Shown: in pieces, positions 1 to 8,676 of the stretch
How the letters are laid out: each line of letters opens with the position of its first letter
How positions within the stretch are numbered: the stretch's first letter is position 1
Source of the DNA: Selaginella moellendorffii
Taxonomy: Eukaryota; Plantae; Lycopodiophyta
Direction: 5' to 3'
Length of the DNA: 8,676 nt
Assembly: GCF_000143415.4 (NCBI RefSeq)
Contig: NW_003314624.1
Coordinates: forward strand, 1-8,676
Program-made: the position numbers and the translations under genes
The notes under the pieces: model-generated
Seen by the model: only the letters and a program-made list of their open reading frames with translations
Database searches by the model: none
What the model was told of the DNA's origin: nothing

Positions 1-1161
1 CACGAAAAGCATTGAGTTGAAGGACGGAAGGTCCAGCTGAGGCATCGAATCCAGCACACGCCTCGCCTGCTCCAAATCTCCAGCTTGAGCATATGCAGCG
101 AGCAACGAGCTCCATGAGAGCACATTCACTTGCGGCATTCGATCAAAAGTGGCTTTGGTCTCGGCGACGTGATGCCGGCTGTAGGCGGCGAGCATGGCGT
201 TCCACGCGATTAGATCTCTCTCAGGCAAGCGATCGAAGAGGAGCTTGGCGTCCTCCAAGCGATCGCTCTGAGCATACGCATGCAAGAGTGTAGTCCACGA
301 GACTAGATCTAGTTGCGGCATGGAGTGTAGAATGATCCTAGCTTCGTCAACCCTCTCACACTGTACGTAGGCCATTAGGAGCGCATTCCAAGCAACTAGA
401 TTTGTTTGAGGCATTGTGTCGAACAAGGCTTTAGCGCTTTCCAAATGCCCGTGCTGGGCATAAGCGGCAAGCATTGCAGTGCAGGATATGAGGTCGTGCT
501 CTGGCATTTCTTCGCTAAAGACTGCCCATGCATGCACGAGACCTTTGCTCTCAATAATGGTTCCCAGCATTGTCGTCCATGACACGATGTTCCACATCGG
601 CATTGCCTCAAACAAGTCCTTGGCTCTTACAACATGCCCTTCACGGGCATATGCAGACAAGAGCACGGACCAGGAAACAAGATCCTTTTGTGGGAGCAAG
701 TCGAAAGCCCTCTTTGCTTCGTCTCGAGATCCATTCTGTGTGTAAGCAGCCAAGATTGTGTTCCATGAAACAAGACTATGCTGGGGCATAGAATCAAACA
801 CTTCTTCAGCCTCCACAAGATGGCCTGCTTCGGCAACTGCACGAAGAAGAATGTTCCATGAAACGACGCTGGGCTGTGGCATCGCGCGGAAGAATTCTCG
901 GGCCTGGTCGAGCTGCCGGTTGCTGGTGTAGGCTAAGAGCATCATGTCCCAGGAGAAGGAATCATTTTTTACTTGGTTCTTGTCGAAGATCTGGCGTGCC
1001 AGGGCGGGGCTTCCACACCTGGCGTACATTTCAATCAGCTTGTTTGCGAGGAAGGAGTCGGAGCTTGCGGAGAGAAAGGAATGGGCTGCCAAGTGAATCT
1101 CTTTTGCATCATTGAGCGTTCTGCAAGATTGAATGGCTTCCACAAGCTGCCTCCTCTCCAT
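1..1161 (-). CDS. PLS-class pentatricopeptide repeat (PPR) protein, N-terminal 387 codons; continues beyond the left window edge; probable organellar RNA-editing specificity factor
   Basis: Manual translation of the minus strand from ATG at 1161 is open to position 1: MERRQLVEAIQSCRTLNDAKEIH...DSFLANKLIEMYARCGSPALARQIFD... followed by ten ~31-aa repeats such as LVSWNTILAAYTQNGSRDEAKRAFDLLPQKD and LISCTAMLAAYAQHGHLESAKALFDTMPQTN, matching the S/SS PPR consensus. Missing from the ORF track because there is no stop inside the window. In-frame stops TAA TGA TGA lie directly upstream of the ATG. Confidence 0.95.
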   Translation of the reverse strand, partial: MERRQLVEAIQSCRTLNDAKEIHLAAHSFLSASSDSFLANKLIEMYARCGSPALARQIFDKNQVKNDSFSWDMMLLAYTSNRQLDQAREFFRAMPQPSVVSWNILLRAVAEAGHLVEAEEVFDSMPQHSLVSWNTILAAYTQNGSRDEAKRAFDLLPQKDLVSWSVLLSAYAREGHVVRAKDLFEAMPMWNIVSWTTMLGTIIESKGLVHAWAVFSEEMPEHDLISCTAMLAAYAQHGHLESAKALFDTMPQTNLVAWNALLMAYVQCERVDEARIILHSMPQLDLVSWTTLLHAYAQSDRLEDAKLLFDRLPERDLIAWNAMLAAYSRHHVAETKATFDRMPQVNVLSWSSLLAAYAQAGDLEQARRVLDSMPQLDLPSFNSMLFV

Positions 1162-1215
1162 TCATCATTAAAAATTTCTCTCGAGTTTGAGACGTTGGAG
1201 CAATAAAGTAAATCG

Positions 1216-1229
1216 ACCCTATAGGGTTT
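1216..1229 (-). promoter_or_regulatory. Telo-box (AAACCCTA on minus strand) overlapping a 12-bp palindrome, ~60 nt upstream of the PPR ATG
   Basis: TAGGGTTT at 1222-1229 is the reverse complement of the plant telo-box; ACCCTATAGGGT at 1216-1227 is a perfect palindrome. Function is inferred from position only. Confidence 0.45.
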
Positions 1230-1634
1230 TCCTGTTCAGATTTTCACTTGTAGCATCTCTTCTTATTTGTCTCTCTCCCCGGGACGTGATGGAGAACTTC
1301 CAGAGCTCCAAATGATCTATTGAAGATCATGAAAGCATTAGAGAGCCTTTGAAAGTTCTCCATTGCCTCTTGGGAGGGGAGACATGGACATGGACATGGC
1401 GGGTCTTCTTTGCATGCTTCATGAAATCCTTTCTCTCTCTGTTTGTTCACCCGTGTTCTTGCTCACAATAAATTCGGACAGCCCCTCTAGTTTTCTATCT
1501 GAGAATCAAAGAAAATGCATTCTACTTTTTTTCTTCTTTTAATCTAAAAGGATTCACTTCACAAAATCTTAGTACTTACTTGGAAGAATGAATGAATCAA
1601 AGGCTAAAAACGCTACAGCAACTAAGACCCTGCT

Positions 1635-3547
1635 TCAGTACTTGTGATTGACGAACCGGCACTCCTTCCTGATCTGGCCCTCCGATCCCAGCAGCGGCTT
1701 GATGGCAGCCATCCTCACCATGGACGCTACAAACTCCTGGAAGAACTTTGCCTGGTCGTAGGCAAATGCCGTAACCAGTGCGCTGGTGGGAGCATACGGC
1801 GCAAACAGCACCTGGTCCGACGTAAGAACACCCTTGTGAAGCTCCAGATCGACGAAGAAGTGATTGTCAAACTTGGTGGGAGTGACGATGTCCAGAGGCG
1901 TCGTCTCCTGCGCGTTGCCTTTGGGAGGACAAATGTGCTCGAGGCTGCGGAGGAGCGCCGGGTCGATGCTCGGATCTGGCCGACGAGTTCCCGCAAAGTT
2001 GTAGAGGCGCTGCCGGAAGCTGGCGCAGCGTGACACGCCAATGGTGTGAGAGCCCGTCAGTGCCACCAAGTCCACGATGGACAGGCCCTTCTTGGCAAAT
2101 GCGGCGATGAGCTGCGGAAGCGTCGAGTTGGGAGGCGGGATGTCTCTGTTGGCCAGGCTGCGGCTCGCAGTCAGGCTGTCTCGACGACCAAGATGAACTT
2201 CCCACGACGGGCCTCCAGTCTGATTCATGCCACACAGAAAAGAAGTGAGATCAAAGATTAGTATCGAAGTACGTACCAGGACGACCGAGTCCCGTGCAGC
2301 AATGGCGAGAACGTCGGCACAAGAAACAACACCCTCGCATTCCTTCTCCAGAGCTGCCTTGATCTCGTCAATGACTTCGAAGCCACGAGCCGAGTTCCTG
2401 TTGGGATTGGCGGTCTTTTCTCCTTTGAAAGTATGCGTATCGTCCAGAAGTATGGAAGCATCACATCCCTGCAAGAAATTCACATCTTATTCTCATAAAA
2501 AACAAAGAAAAACAAAGAAAAAAGAATGCAACAACTTACCAGAACGAAACAATCGTGAAACTGAAGCCTGAGAATGTTTGCAGCAGTTCTGGAATCCTTT
2601 TCCACGGCCTGCTGCAAGACTTCCTTCACGATAGACTCGGCAGCGGGGCACTTCTCCTTGTAGAAGCCAGGCCGCAACACAGCAATTCCCATCTCCGCAG
2701 AAGTAGCACCACCGGGAAATGGAAATGGTCGTCCTCCTGGGAATGGAAAACCCCGTCCTGCTGGGAATGGAAAGCCTCCCACGCCAGGCCTCGGTATCAT
2801 GCCACCGGGAAGTAAACCCGGGATGGCTGGAAACTTTGGAACTTGCTCCTTCGGAACTACTGGATACTCCGGAACCTTTGGCACTTCGGGGACCGGCTGC
2901 TTGGGAAGAATCTCGGGAACTACTGGATACTCCGGAACCTTTGGAACTTCGGGGACCGGCTGCTTGGGAGGAATCTCGGGAACTACTGGATATTCCGGAA
3001 CCTTTGGAACTTCCGGGACCGGCTGCTTGGAAGGAATCTCCGGAACTACTGGATACTCCGGAACCTTTGGAACGGGAACTTCTGGAACTTTGGGACCTTC
3101 TGGCACTTTGGGTGGAATTTCTGGAACTGTGGGTATTTCTGGAGGAACCTCCGGTACCTTGGGAATGATTGGAACTGCTGGAACTTTGGGAACCTCCGGA
3201 ACCTTTGGAACTTCTGGAATGACTGGAACCTCTGGAACCTTTGGAACTTCTGGAACGACTGGAACTTCCTTCGGCGGGACCTTTGGAACGATCGGAATCT
3301 CTGGAATCCTTGGAATCTGTGGAATGCTGGGGATCTCCGGGATCTTGGGAATCGGAATGGTGATCTCTGGGATCAAAGGAGGAAACTCCTGCGCACCGCC
3401 AGCTCCCGGAAAGAATCCAGCGCCAAGCTGTGGCGGAATAAATCCTGGGAACCCCGCAAATCCTCCTTGCTCGGCCTCTCCATCCACTGCCCAAGCAAGA
3501 ACAAGGAAAAGAATGTGTAGCGGCACGAGAAGACGATCCATGGCCAT
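1635..3547 (-). CDS. Class III secretory heme peroxidase with long N-terminal proline-rich repeat extension; exons 3547-2540, 2468-2277, 2219-1635; 594 aa
   Basis: Signal peptide MAMDRLLVPLHILFLVLAWAVDG. The spliced catalytic domain has the distal motif RLQFHDCFVLGCDAS (Arg38/Phe41/His42 equivalents of horseradish peroxidase), NRNSARGFEVID, VSCAD, GGPSWEVHLGRRDS, proximal GSHTIG, TPTKFDN, GQIRKECRFVN and all eight conserved Cys. Exon lengths 1008+192+585 = 1785 nt keep frame; the 192-nt exon 2 is the canonical size for this family. Confidence 0.96.
2220..2276 (-). other. Peroxidase intron 2 (57 nt, GT-AG, phase 0)
   Basis: CTG|GTACGT...AATCAG|ACT GGA GGC; removal joins ARDSVVL to TGGPSW at the conserved class III intron 2 position. 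Confidence 0.92.
2469..2539 (-). other. Peroxidase intron 1 (71 nt, GT-AG, phase 0)
   Basis: CTG|GTAAGT...T-rich tract...TTCTTGCAG|GGA TGT GAT; removal joins HDCFVL to GCDAS at the conserved intron 1 position. Confidence 0.95.
2708..2779 (-). repeat. Three 24-bp coding repeats: GGFPFPAG / RGFPFPGG / RPFPFPGG
   Basis: aa 257-280 of peroxidase exon 1, directly upstream of the catalytic domain. Confidence 0.85.
2819..3382 (-). repeat. Coding proline-rich repeat array (PEVPK/PEIPK, largely 3-residue period) including ~3.5 copies of a 63-bp / 21-aa unit VPKVPEYPVVPEIPPKQPVPE
   Basis: aa 56-243 of exon 1; the plus-strand motif GGAACTACTGGATA recurs at 2853, 2916, 2979 and 3042 (63-nt spacing). 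Confidence 0.95.
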
Positions 3548-3583
3548 GCCTGGAGAAGAAATCTCGCAGCAATCCTCTGGCGC

Positions 3584-3590
3584 TTATATA
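3584..3590 (-). promoter_or_regulatory. TATA box of the peroxidase gene
   Basis: CTATATAAG on the minus strand, 36 nt upstream of the ATG at 3547; identical in the duplicate (7883-7889). Confidence 0.7.
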
Positions 3591-3727
3591 GCAGCTCCAT
3601 TCTTCCTGCTTGGATCGTGGCTGACTTCACACTTCACCTAGAAATCTTGACTGGCCACTGGCATGCGAGAAGAAATCGAAGAAGAACAAGAATCCACCGC
3701 GTCGCGCCTTCCCTACTAGCGAACAGC

Positions 3728-3741
3728 TAACCCTAACCTAA
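3728..3741 (+). promoter_or_regulatory. Telo-box-like element TAACCCTAACCTAA upstream of the relic DUF538 start
   Basis: AACCCTA core 13-25 nt upstream of ATG 3754; one mismatch to canonical AAACCCTA; identical at 7967-7980. Confidence 0.4.
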
Positions 3742-4555
3742 TCGCGCCCACAGATGATGTTCGTGCTTTGTATTTTGACAGTGATCAGCTCACAACCTAA
3801 AACTCCAAATTACATCTACGACTTCGAAATATTGCATGCTACACCAGGTAACAAATTGATGGAATCATTCGAGTCTTGCATTTACCAAGTTCCAAGCTTT
3901 CCTGTGAAAAACGAATTCATACACGATAGTGGAAACTGACGAAGAATCCCATTCATAAACATTGTAAATTTGTATGTGATGAAATGCATAGTACTCACTA
4001 GACGTCTGCTGCCATTCACTGGAGAAATCCATAGCGAGCAACCAGATGTAAAAAAGAAAAAACCTAGAGAGTGATACACATACCGTATGGTAACAAGAAG
4101 CGCAGGGGATCGCAGATGGTGCAATCCTCCAGATTAACTACCTTGCTTAAGTCATACCTATATCGTACCATTCCATGTTTAGGAGCTCCTTTAACATGGG
4201 TTCGTGGGCGTGTTTTTATAAAGATTTTGCTTCGGTCTTTGACTGGTCCAACTATAGATTTACACGCCTCTTTGAAAACGAAGTATTTGGATGAAGCACT
4301 GATCTTTCCCCGCCTTGTCACTCTTCCTTTGCCGTGCAAGTTTCAACATGGCAAAAAAAATGAGATTTAACGGGAGGCCTCTAGTTTTGAATACAGAAAA
4401 GGACTGTTGACAGTGTTTTGGAAGTCGTTCCTGTCGCATCCGGGAAATTAAAAGAAGCCGTTCCAATGGTCCTTCCTGGCGGTGGCGACTTGGAAGTCTT
4501 GCCATTACACATATCGGGGCTGCCTGAAGCCATTTATCGATAGTCGAATTGTTTG

Positions 4556-6469
4556 ATGGCTTGGATCGTCGCCCTTCTCGTAGTGGGGATTCTTCACATT
4601 CACTTGGGAGCAGCGGAAGTATCAGTGCAACGGGGTGAACTGGCTGGAGTAAACAGCTCCAGAGCACTTCTAAGCATGAGCGGTGATACGTCTCAGAAAT
4701 CCATCTGGTGGCAGTTCATTCCGCACCTCAAATCGCATCCAGAGGTCTTCTTGAGGTACTTGGTGTCGATTCCCATTCCAGAAGAGGAGCTGGGCAGTGT
4801 AGAACAGGTATGTGACAAGGACTATCTGAAAGAGATCCGTGATAGGGGAGGGCTCTTAGCAACCAGGAATGCATCCATAGCAGAGTATGAGTCCTCCGAG
4901 CACATCAAGGGTCTGGGAACCATGAAGATCACCATGTGGCTGCTGGCATTTGTCTGTCTGCAGGAAAACCAGCAGGCCGCATCTACAGCAGATGCCGCCT
5001 GTGAACCAATTGCACCAGTTGTTCTGCGGGTTACTCCTCAAGATTATGATCAGGAAATCAGAAACTGGACAAGGTACTCACCAACATACTTCAGCTTGTG
5101 GGAGGTAGTCAGTGACAACAGTAATGTCCAACAGGTCACAAACACGGTTCCCTCCAGGATACTGGAGTTTCCAACTGAGTACTATACAAACACACAGTCA
5201 GAGTCAGGGTTTCAAGCTAGAACTCTAGCAAGGGAAAGCTACAAAAACTTACCAAACTGTGGCAACTTAGGATTTGACATCTTTGCTGATCGAGGTGAGG
5301 TTGCGCTGACTGATAAAGGAGCCCGCTTACCATCTCCAAGCGTGAGAAAAGCTCCTGAAGCAGGTGTGTACAACTATGGTGGAGCCGCGAAATGTTATAG
5401 AATGGATGAAGAGTTCAAGAACGCCACAGGCAGTGAGCTTCTCACTGTCCTGGGACCGGCCTTTCTTCCGGGCAAAATTGTTGGAGGCTGCCAAAGCGAG
5501 TCATCCTTTCTGTTTTCCAACCAGTCGGGCTACTACGCTTGCTACAGTGAGGAGCTGAATGCTACTGGAACCACACTCAGCTCGTGGAGATTCCACTGCG
5601 TACACTTCGACTGTGGCGAGAAAGAAGTGAAAGCCAGTCTGGTGCCGTATTTCAAAGCCGTCTATGAAGCTCCCAGGAACGAGACCAATACACTGGTGCC
5701 TTTGCAAAGGCAGAGCTGCTCAGGACTTTCATCTATCTGGGTGCGAACGACGAACAGTCCGTCATCCAACTTTCCTCTCTATGATGCACCAGTATGTGAA
5801 AATAGAAGAGCAGCCAAGCCGGAAATGTGCTTGTGGGGCATAGATCCACCCCAGGATCTGCTGCAAACAAGTTCGGACATAGACATTCTTAGCTCGCTGC
5901 TCTCTCAAGTTAAGGCGTCGTACATTGCTGAGCATCTCTCGCTTTTGAACCTGGAGCAAGGTTCCCCGGCGGAGTTCTGGGTGGTGGCCATAACTCTCCC
6001 CAGTGCTTTCATCGCAGTTGTTGCGGGAGTGGTGCCATTGACAGATGCACAGTTGAAGCTGGTGCGAGGTGTGAGAGTCTCTTCACGCTTGAAAATAGGG
6101 TTTTTGTGCTGCTGCAACCTGGTCCTGGCCATTGTTTCCTACTCCGCTGTTGTGGCTTTGACGCCGACTGAGTTGCAAAGAGAGAAGAGTTTCAGGAGCT
6201 GGGCACTACACGCTGACCAAGTGCAGGTGACAAGCCATGGATTGCGAGTGCTGGTTGTTGCTCAGGGCGAATCGACTTACAAATCAAATAGTCTCCTGCT
6301 CGCATGGGTGTCCACGGCGGTTTTGATGCCAGTGGTCCTTTTGATCACCTTCCTGAGATGCAGGCAGGAGCTTAGAACTCTTCAAAGCCATAGGAGGAGC
6401 AGTTTGGGTGGGATGCAGCTTTCTTCACGAACGCCAAAGAGGTTTCTGAGATCTTATAGTTTAATATGA
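4556..6469 (+). CDS. Uncharacterised membrane glycoprotein, 637 aa: signal peptide, large Cys-rich ectodomain, three C-terminal TM helices, basic tail
   Basis: 1.9-kb non-repetitive open frame; true ATG is 4556 (the track starts at TTG 4553). Signal-like MAWIVALLVVGILHIHLGAA; 12 Cys and 7 N-x-S/T sequons before TM1; hydrophobic stretches at ~5975-6040, 6095-6160 and 6293-6355; basic loop 1 and tail fit the positive-inside rule. No family recognised. Confidence 0.85.
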   Translation: MAWIVALLVVGILHIHLGAAEVSVQRGELAGVNSSRALLSMSGDTSQKSIWWQFIPHLKSHPEVFLRYLVSIPIPEEELGSVEQVCDKDYLKEIRDRGGLLATRNASIAEYESSEHIKGLGTMKITMWLLAFVCLQENQQAASTADAACEPIAPVVLRVTPQDYDQEIRNWTRYSPTYFSLWEVVSDNSNVQQVTNTVPSRILEFPTEYYTNTQSESGFQARTLARESYKNLPNCGNLGFDIFADRGEVALTDKGARLPSPSVRKAPEAGVYNYGGAAKCYRMDEEFKNATGSELLTVLGPAFLPGKIVGGCQSESSFLFSNQSGYYACYSEELNATGTTLSSWRFHCVHFDCGEKEVKASLVPYFKAVYEAPRNETNTLVPLQRQSCSGLSSIWVRTTNSPSSNFPLYDAPVCENRRAAKPEMCLWGIDPPQDLLQTSSDIDILSSLLSQVKASYIAEHLSLLNLEQGSPAEFWVVAITLPSAFIAVVAGVVPLTDAQLKLVRGVRVSSRLKIGFLCCCNLVLAIVSYSAVVALTPTELQREKSFRSWALHADQVQVTSHGLRVLVVAQGESTYKSNSLLLAWVSTAVLMPVVLLITFLRCRQELRTLQSHRRSSLGGMQLSSRTPKRFLRSYSLI

Positions 6470-6837
6470 CCAGTTTTAATCTGGCTAGTTTTAAAAGACA
6501 ACATATTATAAACGTGTAATAAGGGGACCATAGATTTTTTGATTGATGTTAAGTGAGAGGCTGAAAGAATGCACAGATTAACAGCGTGAAATGTGATCTC
6601 TGTTGGATCACTGGTATAACTACCCATTCTCTTGCTGTCAAGGTGCAGGTGCTTTTGGTACATTTCACAACAGGTGATAGTAAAATCTAAATTTTTTATT
6701 ATAATAATTTCAATTATGTTAGGTGAAACTTGCCATGTTATGCAGAAGCAATAGCACAATCTCATGTACAACAAGAACCACTGTCAAAGAGCATTATGCT
6801 ATATCAATTCATCCTTTTGTGGGTGAGGAAAAGTAGA

Positions 6838-6935
6838 TTTAATTTTTTTTATTAGAATATTTGATATTTATTTTTTTATATTAAACTTATATGTTATTTA
6901 CCTTTTTTTGGACTTAAGATCAAGTTTTATATTTG
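6838..6935. other. Very AT-rich low-complexity tract near the right end of the intervening segment
   Basis: Runs such as AATTTTTTTTATTAGAATATTTGATATTTATTTTTTTATATTAAAC contrast with the roughly balanced GC of the coding regions. Confidence 0.5.
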
Positions 6936-7043
6936 GTGCATCATGTTGACTTCCGTTGGGTTGACTTGAGCTCATCGAATGAACTGAACTCAAAAACTAC
7001 CCAGCCTCTTGAAGACACGAGCCAGAGTTCCAGTTCGTCCATA

Positions 7044-7846
7044 AAAATCACATCTTCTTGTCAAATCCAAAGGAAAAAAAATGCAACAAACTTAACAGAA
7101 CGAAACAATCATGGAAGTGAACCCTGAGAATGTTGCAGCAGTTCTTGGATCTTTTTCCACAGCCTGCTCTTCACAGTGGACTCGGCAGCAGGGCACTTCT
7201 CCTAGTAGAAGCCAGGCCGCAACATAGCAATTCCCATGCAGAAGTAGCACCACCGGGAAATGGCCTGAGAATGGAAAACCCTGTCCCTGACGCCAGGCCC
7301 CAGTATCATGCCACTGGGAAGCAAACCCGGGATCACTGGAAACTTTGGAACTTTGGGGACCGGCTGCTTGAGAAGAACCTCGGGAACTACTAGATACTCC
7401 GGTACCTTTGGAACTTCGGGGACCGGCTTCTTGGGAGGAATCTCCGAAAGTACTGGATACTCCCGAACCTTTGGAACTGGAACTTCTGGCACTTTGGGTG
7501 AGAAGTGAAGAGAAGTGAAGAGAAGAGGAACCTCCGGAACCTCAGGGATGACTGGAACCTCCGGAACCTTTGGAACTTCTGGAATGACTGGAACCTCTGG
7601 AACCTTTGGAACTTCTGGAACGACTGGAACTTCCTTCGGCCTTTGGAACGATCGGGATCTCTGGAATCCTGGGGATCTCCGGATCTTAGGAATCGGAATG
7701 GTGATCTCTCGTATCTCTTGCGCGCCACTAGCTCCTGGAAAGAATCCATCACCAAGCTGTGGCGGGATAAATCCTTGGAACCCGCAAATCCCCCTCATCC
7801 ACTGCCCAAGGAAAAGAACGCGTAGCGGGACGAGAAGAGGATCCAT
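7044..7846 (-). pseudogene. Truncated, degraded duplicate of peroxidase exon 1 and intron 1 (no exons 2-3)
   Basis: Same repeat array and GIAxLRPGFY; AAG>TAG nonsense change at 7202-7204; intron 1 donor GT>TT at 7095; several frameshifting deletions; damaged signal peptide; similarity ends at ~7044. Confidence 0.88.
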
Positions 7847-8011
7847 GGCTGGAGAAGAAATCTCGCAGCAATCCTCTGGCGCTTATATAGCAGCTCCATT
7901 CTACCATCGTAGAAATGCGAGAAGAAATCACCGCGGGAGATTCCTTCTCCCCTACTAGCGAATAGCTAACCCTAACCTAATCGCGCCCAGAGGTGAGAGA
8001 TGATGTTCGTG
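7044..8011 (+). repeat. Direct repeat copy 2 (~0.97 kb) of 2476-3765
   Basis: Shared blocks such as GGAGAAGAAATCTCGCAGCAATCCTCTGGCGCTTATATAGCAGCTCCATTCT and CCCTACTAGCGAA.AGCTAACCCTAACCTAATCGCGCCCA. Confidence 0.9.
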
Positions 8012-8473
8012 GTTGCGCCATTGCTCTTCTTCCTGGCATCGCTGCCTCGATTGTCCGCCGCTGACGCCATTCTCCCCAGCGCCGAGGTGTCGCGATTCTT
8101 GGAAGAGCATGGCCTTCCCGGCGGTCTTCTCCCCAATCTGGTCACCAGCTACTCGCTGCGCGACAACAATTCCACATTCGTCGTCCATCTCCAGCACGAA
8201 TGCTACCACCGCTTCGAGAATCTGGTGTGGTATGGCACTACCATCTCTGGGAAGCTGGGCTATGGCAAGATCGAGAATCTATCGGGAATCCAGGCCAAGG
8301 AGCTCTTCCTGTGGCTGGGAGTGACGGGAATTCGCGTGGATGAATCCAACCGAGACTACATCTACTTTGAGGTGGGGATTGTGTCCAAGAGGCTGCGCGC
8401 ATCGCTCTTTCGAGATCCACCATCGTGCTCAAAGTCTAGTGGCTCTCTTGTGGATCTACACGAGGCAATCTAG
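8000..8473 (+). CDS. DUF538-family protein with signal peptide, 157 aa, intronless
   Basis: Signal peptide MMFVVAPLLFFLASLPRLSAA; family hallmarks LEEHGLPGGLLP, VTSYSL, ECY..F...V.Y...ISG.LGYGKIENLSGIQAKELFLW, IYFEVGIVSK and F..PP.C. Confidence 0.93.
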   Translation: MMFVVAPLLFFLASLPRLSAADAILPSAEVSRFLEEHGLPGGLLPNLVTSYSLRDNNSTFVVHLQHECYHRFENLVWYGTTISGKLGYGKIENLSGIQAKELFLWLGVTGIRVDESNRDYIYFEVGIVSKRLRASLFRDPPSCSKSSGSLVDLHEAI

Positions 8474-8620
8474 AGTTTTAGTTCCTCGTCTTCTTCCTGG
8501 TGTACGTATAAGTGCTCTTTCAAGAGCCTCCATCGTGCTCAAAGTCTAGTGGTTCTCTTGTGGATCTAGATAAGTTTAATCTAGAGTTTTGGTTCCTCGT
8601 GTTCTTCGTGTTCTATGTAT
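8404..8620 (+). repeat. Two-copy ~110-bp tandem duplication spanning the DUF538 C-terminus and 3' UTR
   Basis: 8404-8513 vs 8514-8620; CATCGTGCTCAAAGTCTAGTGG.TCTCTTGTGGATCTA at 8421 and 8531; AATCTAGAGTTTT.GTTCCTCGT.TTCTTC at 8467 and 8578. Confidence 0.92.
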
Positions 8621-8676
8621 CTTTTTGTTATTAAGATAATTCGAAGTGTCACACTCTTGGTGTTCTTGGTGTCACT

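Follow-up and report, generated by a model that had tools for sequence, protein, structure and literature searches.

Among plant class III peroxidases, PRX9 and PRX40 have been reported as extensin peroxidases (10.1101/319020), and among plant wall proteins a functional domain and a proline-rich module are combined behind one signal peptide in several chimeric classes (LRX, PERK, class I formins, FLAs and HyPRPs), as set out in the available part of PMC5073881. We describe here a class III (secretory) peroxidase gene of the lycophyte Selaginella moellendorffii that resembles these chimeric proteins in its layout, with the difference that the partner domain is a peroxidase, unlike in the chimeric classes named in the available parts of PMC5073881 and PMC3149072. 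The gene lies on an 8,676-bp stretch of DNA, hereafter the window, which is the entire scaffold GL377928.1 of assembly GCA_000143415.2. It occupies positions 3547..1635 of the minus strand, has three exons and encodes 594 amino acids (aa), and in its product ~260 proline-rich residues separate a predicted signal peptide from the peroxidase domain. The gene is expressed, and we confirm that this unusual architecture is real and that it is mis-annotated in public records. The novelty lies in the proline-rich domain that is built into the class III peroxidase. The original prediction, made from the letters of the window alone, took such a fusion to be possibly undescribed; we likewise found no description of a chimera between a peroxidase and a proline-rich protein (PRP) in the searchable open-access literature, where the matches for 'N-terminal extension' concern RBOH.

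The closest relatives over the whole catalytic domain are normal-length enzymes of Selaginella, Diphasiastrum, gymnosperms and angiosperms named PRX72-like or PRX49, with 56-61% identity. Like this PRX72/PRX49-like group, and like HRP C1A, Arabidopsis A2 (1pa2) and 4cuo, the Selaginella protein has the catalytic, Ca-binding and disulfide residues and no C-terminal propeptide; unlike the PRX72/PRX49-like relatives, which are ~310-345 aa long, it has ~260 extra residues before the mature N-terminus. PF00141 matches all three exons at consecutive profile positions (1-29, 31-90 and 92-235), scoring 1.1e-21 for exon 2 and 9.3e-42 for exon 3, with exon 1 alone below the cut-off, and the intron positions conform to the family pattern. 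Solved plant peroxidases match at E-values of 1e-102 to 1e-92 over their full mature length, the banyan peroxidase 4cuo reaching 344 bits over mature residues 2-303. The motifs RLQFHDCF, GCDAS and GSHTIG are present in the public 309-aa protein, which is identical to the window exons, as are eight Cys, enough for four disulfides, each where it is expected. The peroxidase appears catalytically complete, with its machinery intact. The protein ends in CRFVNHKY, five residues past the final conserved Cys; mature peroxidases of solved structure stop at this point too, and we therefore see no C-terminal propeptide. By this comparison there is no vacuolar C-terminal extension either, as had been claimed at the outset. 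At the other end of the protein, the signal peptide is predicted from hydrophobicity and from an AlphaFold2 model as a hydrophobic helix at residues 4-22, with a grand average of hydropathy of 2.5 for aa 6-21.

The signal peptide, the repeats and the start of the peroxidase domain were said to share a single exon, and this has held up: exon 1 (Table 1) is one open frame with RNA support. The frame that begins at the first methionine (M1) passes through three compositionally different segments and enters the peroxidase in phase. Their low complexity leaves four of six frames open over the repeats, so that an open frame alone is weak evidence; the case for coding is carried by the signal peptide, by the in-frame join to the peroxidase, by the RNA contigs and by a ~1% diverged variant that keeps the frame. 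Between aa 27 and 285 the module is 31% Pro and 24% Val plus Ile, with an isoelectric point (pI) of 5.1. Its prolines are strictly periodic, with a period of three residues (autocorrelation of 2.24x for lag 3 and <0.25x for lags 1-2), and of the two other positions in each triplet one holds Glu or Lys and the other Val or Ile (or Tyr). This period would fit an extended polyproline-II helix with Pro, aliphatic and charged faces. The AlphaFold2 model, which was computed from the single sequence and is of low confidence, shows neither helix nor strand from residue 23 to residue 295, a result consistent with a proline-rich module without a fold. Titin PEVK and other amphipathic polyproline-II repeats have a similar Pro/Glu/Val/Lys composition and are likewise predicted to have no fold; the resemblance is one of composition, with no known homology to the module.

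Recounting in the translation bore out the four tyrosines of the original prediction, at 165, 186, 207 and 228, each within KVPEYPVV and 21 aa apart; there is no other Tyr in aa 27-285, so that Tyr makes up only 1.5% of the module, and all four sit in the half adjoining the enzyme. Tandem Repeats Finder reports a 63-nucleotide (nt) tandem repeat of 3.5 copies that are 95% identical, with nested periods of 9, 18, 27, 36 and 63 nt, and Tyr units 1-3 differ from one another by 3-5 nt, mostly at synonymous sites. The exact 21-aa spacing is thus a consequence of tandem amplification of the 63-nt unit and does not count as independent evidence of design. In other words, the even spacing of the tyrosines is real but is a by-product of a young amplification.

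A search of public sequencing runs gave twenty in which the stretch is present, and contigs of four of them (X1, X2, X8 and X11, from four studies and under three organism labels) were aligned to positions 1450-3750. The contigs of all four lack both introns, which are precisely removed (joints 2219/2277 and 2467/2539), and these runs therefore hold RNA. In X1, X8 and X11 a single contig has one end in the 3' untranslated region (3'UTR; 1506-1537), spans exons 3 and 2 and takes in 343-352 nt of exon 1, crossing the linker and entering the last Tyr unit, where it ends at 2881-2890. Beyond ~2890 the de Bruijn unitigs break at the repeats yet overlap by ~30 nt, reaching 3579 and then 3686. The mean word depth of the 5' unitig is close to that of the peroxidase contig (65.4 vs 69.5 in X1, 98 vs 88 in X8 and 10.8 vs 7.8-11 in X2), and the spliced mRNA is covered continuously and evenly from ~140 nt upstream of the ATG to the 3'UTR. 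The transcripts retain the repeats, as the original prediction supposed: no joint that skips the repeat block occurs in the contigs of the four runs. A 334-nt unitig of X1 (3246-3579) matches the window with 0 mismatches and spans the six indel sites that separate the intact 5' end from a degraded copy described below; because it matches at all six, the intact 5' end exists and is transcribed. An assembly chimera as the source of the join between repeats and peroxidase is excluded by spliced RNA unitigs that match the intact version without a mismatch.

The 5' leader has two upstream ATGs, one at 3664 (8 codons) and one at 3600 (75 codons). The latter opens a reading frame that is out of phase and overlaps the main ATG, and its context is strong (A at -3, G at +4). 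The leader also contains TATATAAG at 3590-3583, only ~40 nt before the main ATG. The depth of X1 falls from 65 to 42 upstream of ~3575, so two classes of transcript start are possible. Separately, X8 and X11 yield contigs that match only ~100 nt around the start codon (window 3499-3600), with 3-7 mismatches, and extend upstream into sequence absent from both the window and the related scaffold GL377649.1, leaving loose ends at 3600; X11 shows an additional skip of 95 nt (3403/3499). These start-region contigs may represent another transcript, or a paralogue that shares the signal-peptide region.

The degraded copy is a partial duplicate of the gene within the window (Table 1). In it a TAG replaces the Lys that follows GFY and the splice donor GT has become TT; two Tyr-bearing units are kept. 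The duplicated segment includes the first codons of a divergent DUF538 gene, which are found at the upstream end of the main copy (3754). A twin of the locus is present on the 833-kb scaffold GL377649.1, of which region 142705-157870 was compared with the window. It came to light through exact-sequence matches of the 345-aa public model (below) and of the DUF538 protein; the 309-aa public protein gave no such match. In the alignment this scaffold corresponds to window 8676..7554 (99.6% identical) joined straight to window 3295..1, with zero differences on the latter side across the aligned 1500-3295, and 4.3 kb of the window (~3296-7553) is missing from it. The junction falls inside an 87-nt stretch that is identical in both window copies (3189-3275 = 7554-7640), and the GL377649.1 version represents either a haplotype produced by unequal crossover or a collapse of the assembly. 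Its peroxidase gene bears the 5' end of the window's degraded duplicate, with indels of 6, 10, 13, 1, 12 and 19 nt that amount to 61 nt (1852 letters vs 1913); the ATG frame is out of phase, and an in-frame TAA lies ahead of the peroxidase frame.

This twin has a bearing on how the gene appears in public records. The public 309-aa protein SELMODRAFT_235371/138810 is 100% identical to the exons, reproduces both joints and begins at M286, and the RefSeq model XP_002987834.2 ('peroxidase A2', 345 aa) begins at M250. Both are without signal peptide and without repeats, neither splices the repeats out, and only M1 supplies a signal peptide. The public models start at internal methionines because the annotated scaffold, GL377649.1, has a frameshifted 5' end. 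Catalogues of Selaginella peroxidases that were built on these truncated models would miss the full-length form. The gene table of the collection lists for the window scaffold a 594-residue product with a range of 1635..7846 that begins at the ATG of the degraded copy; this product equals the present model in length and may be that model or a different splice.

Relatives of the N-terminal block were sought with exon 1 as query, in a word-indexed search and in an exhaustive HMMER search of 1.84 billion representatives, and the linker with the start of the peroxidase was also searched separately. For this architecture these searches returned only the degraded duplicate and the truncated public model, and the exhaustive search with exon 1 found no stand-alone relative. 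The original prediction had suggested that other peroxidases with N-terminal PE[VIL]PK arrays be looked for; among the 1.84 billion representatives there is none but the window's own degraded copy. The best matches to the repeats (bacterial LPXTG/cohesin surface proteins, a formin and a transposase-linked protein) are compositional and are not homologues. Three matches in which the peroxidase starts far downstream (P0148, P0172 and P0273) proved to be mis-merged tandem peroxidases, as did those of the long relatives of 450-540 aa that were read, which have no extension. In exon-1 fragments of other peroxidases, one of them named 'peroxidase 9', the exact position of the block is occupied by a short stretch rich in Gly and Phe.

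From the nested repeat periods, the lack of a stand-alone relative in the exhaustive search and the short Gly/Phe-rich stretch of other peroxidases, we infer that the block arose by expansion, within the exon, of a short ancestral Gly/Phe/Pro-rich N-terminus and not by gene fusion. The fusion to a stand-alone repeat protein that had first been envisaged is thus not borne out. Like PRX9-type peroxidases, the Selaginella protein has a Gly/Phe-rich stretch directly before its GFY start, and their stretch is similar in composition to the Selaginella GFPFP linker. Unlike the Selaginella block, the PRX9-type stretch is 15-30 residues long and is without P-x-x repeats, and the likeness is one of the N-terminal stretch, not one derived from a tree. 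An environmental contig (ENA ERZ11806573, 782 nt, positions 92-559; P0222) encodes a peroxidase first exon with a stretch of ~80 aa rich in Pro, Ser, Ala and Tyr between the signal peptide and the GFY start. It is a different proline-rich N-terminal extension, apparently of independent origin.

The composition of the module recalls the PELPK proteins (AtPELPK1/2 = PRP10/PRP9) and the PRPs, which are likewise of the secreted type and rich in Pro, Glu, Lys and aliphatic residues, and weak HMMER matches of 39-43 bits link it to PELPK1-like legume proteins, with the similarity confined to the repeats. The PELPK class is angiosperm-only and has conserved non-repeat termini, according to the available part of PMC3149072. 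In contrast, the block described here belongs to a lycophyte, resembles that class in the repeats only and is part of an enzyme, not a stand-alone protein. The PELPK-type label given to it initially therefore stands for composition, in that there are six PE[VIL]PK pentapeptides, but not for class membership: there is zero exact PELPK and the main unit is a P-x-x triplet. From its sequence, then, the block is not a member of the PELPK class, and its likeness to PELPK and PEVK repeats is compositional only. Among motifs of other wall proteins, neither SPPP (extensin) nor PPV or KKPCPP (PRP) occurs in it. The content of Pro, Val, Lys, Cys, Tyr and Thr (PVKCYT) over aa 26-285, 56%, is above the >45% composition rule for PRPs in the available part of PMC5073881, and with PPV 0 and PVx[KT] 1 the module falls outside the motif rule given there. 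It also falls outside the extensins as defined by SP3-5 with YxY or VYK, since it has no SPPP and its Tyr occur only as PEYPVV. Unlike the chimeric wall proteins, then, the Selaginella protein has a module that is not extensin-like and that was probably not gained by fusion.

The variant represented in X11, which is ~1% diverged, offers a view of the constraint on the two halves of the protein. It has 17 coding differences from the window, without a frameshift, a stop or a change of Tyr. In aa 286-594 there are 9 synonymous differences and 1 nonsynonymous (E309K), and across the signal peptide and repeats there are 2 synonymous and 4 nonsynonymous (R5H, H11R, G151V and V230I). Variants seen in single contigs of X2 are L245 (synonymous) and P215L. 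As judged from these substitutions, the peroxidase part is clearly under purifying selection.

We suggest that the module probably stays on the mature enzyme as an extended tether or spacer. The first exon sets a non-globular proline-rich module of ~260 residues between signal peptide and catalytic domain; in this model the module would have grown inside the exon from a short Gly/Phe-rich N-terminus like that of PRX9-type peroxidases. Once retained, the module would hold or position the enzyme in the wall matrix, and the protein would count as a chimeric wall protein comparable to LRX, PERK or FLA. The four Tyr may permit oxidative fixation, although the model does not need them to. Several points weigh against this proposal. 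The contig evidence resolves neither transcript starts nor single full-length molecules, as unitigs break at the repeats, and the out-of-frame upstream ATG could lower the use of M1. The module is slightly acidic (pI 5.1), which makes simple ionic binding to pectin unlikely. The searches described above found no module-bearing orthologue outside Selaginella moellendorffii, and the N-terminal block, while coding, appears to be under relaxed constraint, to judge from one variant. Finally, if GL377649.1 is a real haplotype, the plant tolerates one chromosome on which the intact N-terminus has been lost.

The original prediction assigned a more active part to the module, in which the Tyr-bearing repeats would be the enzyme's own substrate, so that an H2O2 burst would couple the Tyr of neighbouring molecules through dityrosine or isodityrosine and yield a self-anchored polymer. 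Extensins are cross-linked through Tyr by peroxidases (10.1101/319020; references in the available part of PMC3149072), and much about the gene agrees with such a scheme: the catalytic machinery is intact and of the secreted type with no vacuolar signal, the Tyr are clustered in the half of the module beside the enzyme, the recently amplified part is the Tyr unit, whose copies differ mostly at synonymous sites, and Tyr persists in the variant of X11 as well as in two units that remain in the degraded duplicate. Yet four Tyr in 260 residues (1.5%) is far under what extensins or PPVYK-type PRPs contain, the PEYPVV context matches no described cross-link motif (YxY, VYK), and the regular spacing is accounted for by the 63-nt duplication. 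Judged on these features of the sequence, self-cross-linking seems weaker than it first appeared, and we regard it as unlikely. We would put slightly less trust still in the proposal that an amphipathic polyproline-II module, oxidatively coupled in trans, makes the protein an H2O2-triggered, self-assembling enzyme-polymer and the founder of a new chimeric wall protein class born by de novo repeat expansion.

The remaining alternatives give the module no lasting role in the wall. The block might be an N-terminal propeptide or a tolerated neutral expansion, translated and taken through the ER but then cleaved off or without a role, with a mature enzyme that is an ordinary soluble or ionically bound wall peroxidase. 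Its relaxed constraint (2 synonymous to 4 nonsynonymous, vs 9 to 1 in aa 286-594), its youth and continuing expansion, its absence from any other species searched, the normal length (~330 aa) of the nearest relatives and the fact that mature solved peroxidases begin exactly at the end of the block would all be accommodated in this way. However, there is no recognisable processing site, and neither of two diverged alleles has a stop or a frameshift within the 260 aa, which together with the synonymous bias between the units suggests a block that is not wholly neutral; we consider this explanation rather improbable. It is more improbable again that the gene is a pseudogene in the making or a dispensable lineage-specific copy at a structurally unstable locus, with a long form of no special biology. 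The locus does contain a partial duplicate, it varies by the presence or absence of 4.3 kb, and it has a hybrid allele with a frameshift; the GL377649.1 hybrid has a broken N-terminus, and there are upstream ATGs in the leader. Against such decay, transcripts of the intact form are present at good depth in RNA from four independent studies, the peroxidase part is clearly under purifying selection, and the hybrid may itself be an assembly collapse across ~100 nt that are identical in both copies. We attach hardly any weight to translation from an internal Met (M250 or M286) with the repeats as a long 5' leader. Both public models begin there, and with four of six frames open over the repeats the open frame proves little; but the frameshifted 5' end of the annotated scaffold explains the public starts, the products would lack a signal peptide although the domain, with its four disulfides, Ca sites and N-glycosylation site, needs the secretory pathway, and M1 and the signal peptide are in frame through three compositionally different segments. 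A tether or spacer retained on the mature enzyme thus remains the explanation that we favour.

Table 1. Features of the peroxidase gene and its surroundings, in window coordinates.
Feature	Position	Strand	Remarks
5' leader	3548..3686	minus	RNA contigs: X1 covers 3570-3686, X2 reaches 3750
Exon 1	3547..2540	minus	336 codons in one uninterrupted frame, from ATG to FHDCFV-L, then GTAAGT
Start codon and predicted signal peptide	3479..3547	minus	aa 1 to ~23
N-terminal Gly/Phe/Pro-rich module	3374..3472	minus	aa 26-58
P-[E/K/Q/R]-[I/V] triplet repeats	3068..3373	minus	aa 59-160; 9-nt units, higher periods 18, 27, 36
Tyr-bearing 21-aa units	2834..3067	minus	aa 161-238; three full 63-nt units and the start of a fourth (8/21 aa)
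Basic Gly/Phe/Pro-rich linker	2693..2833	minus	aa 239-285; three GFPFP-type units
Peroxidase domain start within exon 1	2540..2692	minus	aa 286-336, including distal RLQFHDCF motif
Intron 1	2539..2469	minus	71 nt, GT..AG; joint in RNA contigs of 4/4 runs
Exon 2	2468..2277	minus	64 aa, begins GCDAS; peroxidase
Intron 2	2276..2220	minus	57 nt, GT..AG; without in-frame stop
Exon 3	2219..1635	minus	194 codons and stop; proximal His motif GSHTIG, one NST glycosylation site
3'UTR to limit of RNA contigs	1506..1634	minus	contigs end at 1506, 1516, 1537, 1582
Degraded partial duplicate of promoter, exon 1 and start of intron 1	7070..7996	minus	frameshifting indels, TAG, lost donor
DUF538 gene, intact, single exon	8000-8473	plus	divergent from degraded peroxidase copy

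The rest of the window and the flanks of its twin hold several further features. The 3' end of the DUF538 gene is flanked by a 55-nt direct repeat (8404-8458 / 8514-8568), 93% identical and 110 nt apart. Inside the segment that GL377649.1 lacks there is a single open reading frame (ORF) of 638 aa on the plus strand (4553-6469), the product of which is hydrophobic at its N-terminus and over stretches of its C-terminal part; next to it lies an AT-rich tract (6500-7000, GC content 0.32). This ORF has no Pfam match and no usable Atlas match, its exact sequence is on record nowhere else, and it is unrelated to a 664-aa neighbour gene on GL377649.1. We consider it a candidate for a lineage-specific gene or for mobile-element cargo. 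On GL377649.1 a second peroxidase of normal length (328 aa) lies ~3 kb downstream of the repeat-bearing gene (region coordinates 11208-12316), and the 664-aa gene, in which PPR-like repeats can be seen by eye, lies between the two (region coordinates 8640-10634); window 26-1161 is the 3' portion of this 664-aa gene. A search of the window against Rfam gave no matches.

The Selaginella gene speaks to the long-standing question of what keeps a given class III peroxidase at its particular site in the wall, for which the recognised solutions are separate scaffold or binding partners. If a retained module does act as we suggest, the protein, with its built-in, wall-protein-like domain, would amount to a natural experiment on an oxidative enzyme tethered to the wall. 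It would also clearly exemplify the birth of a new protein domain by microsatellite-like expansion inside an exon.

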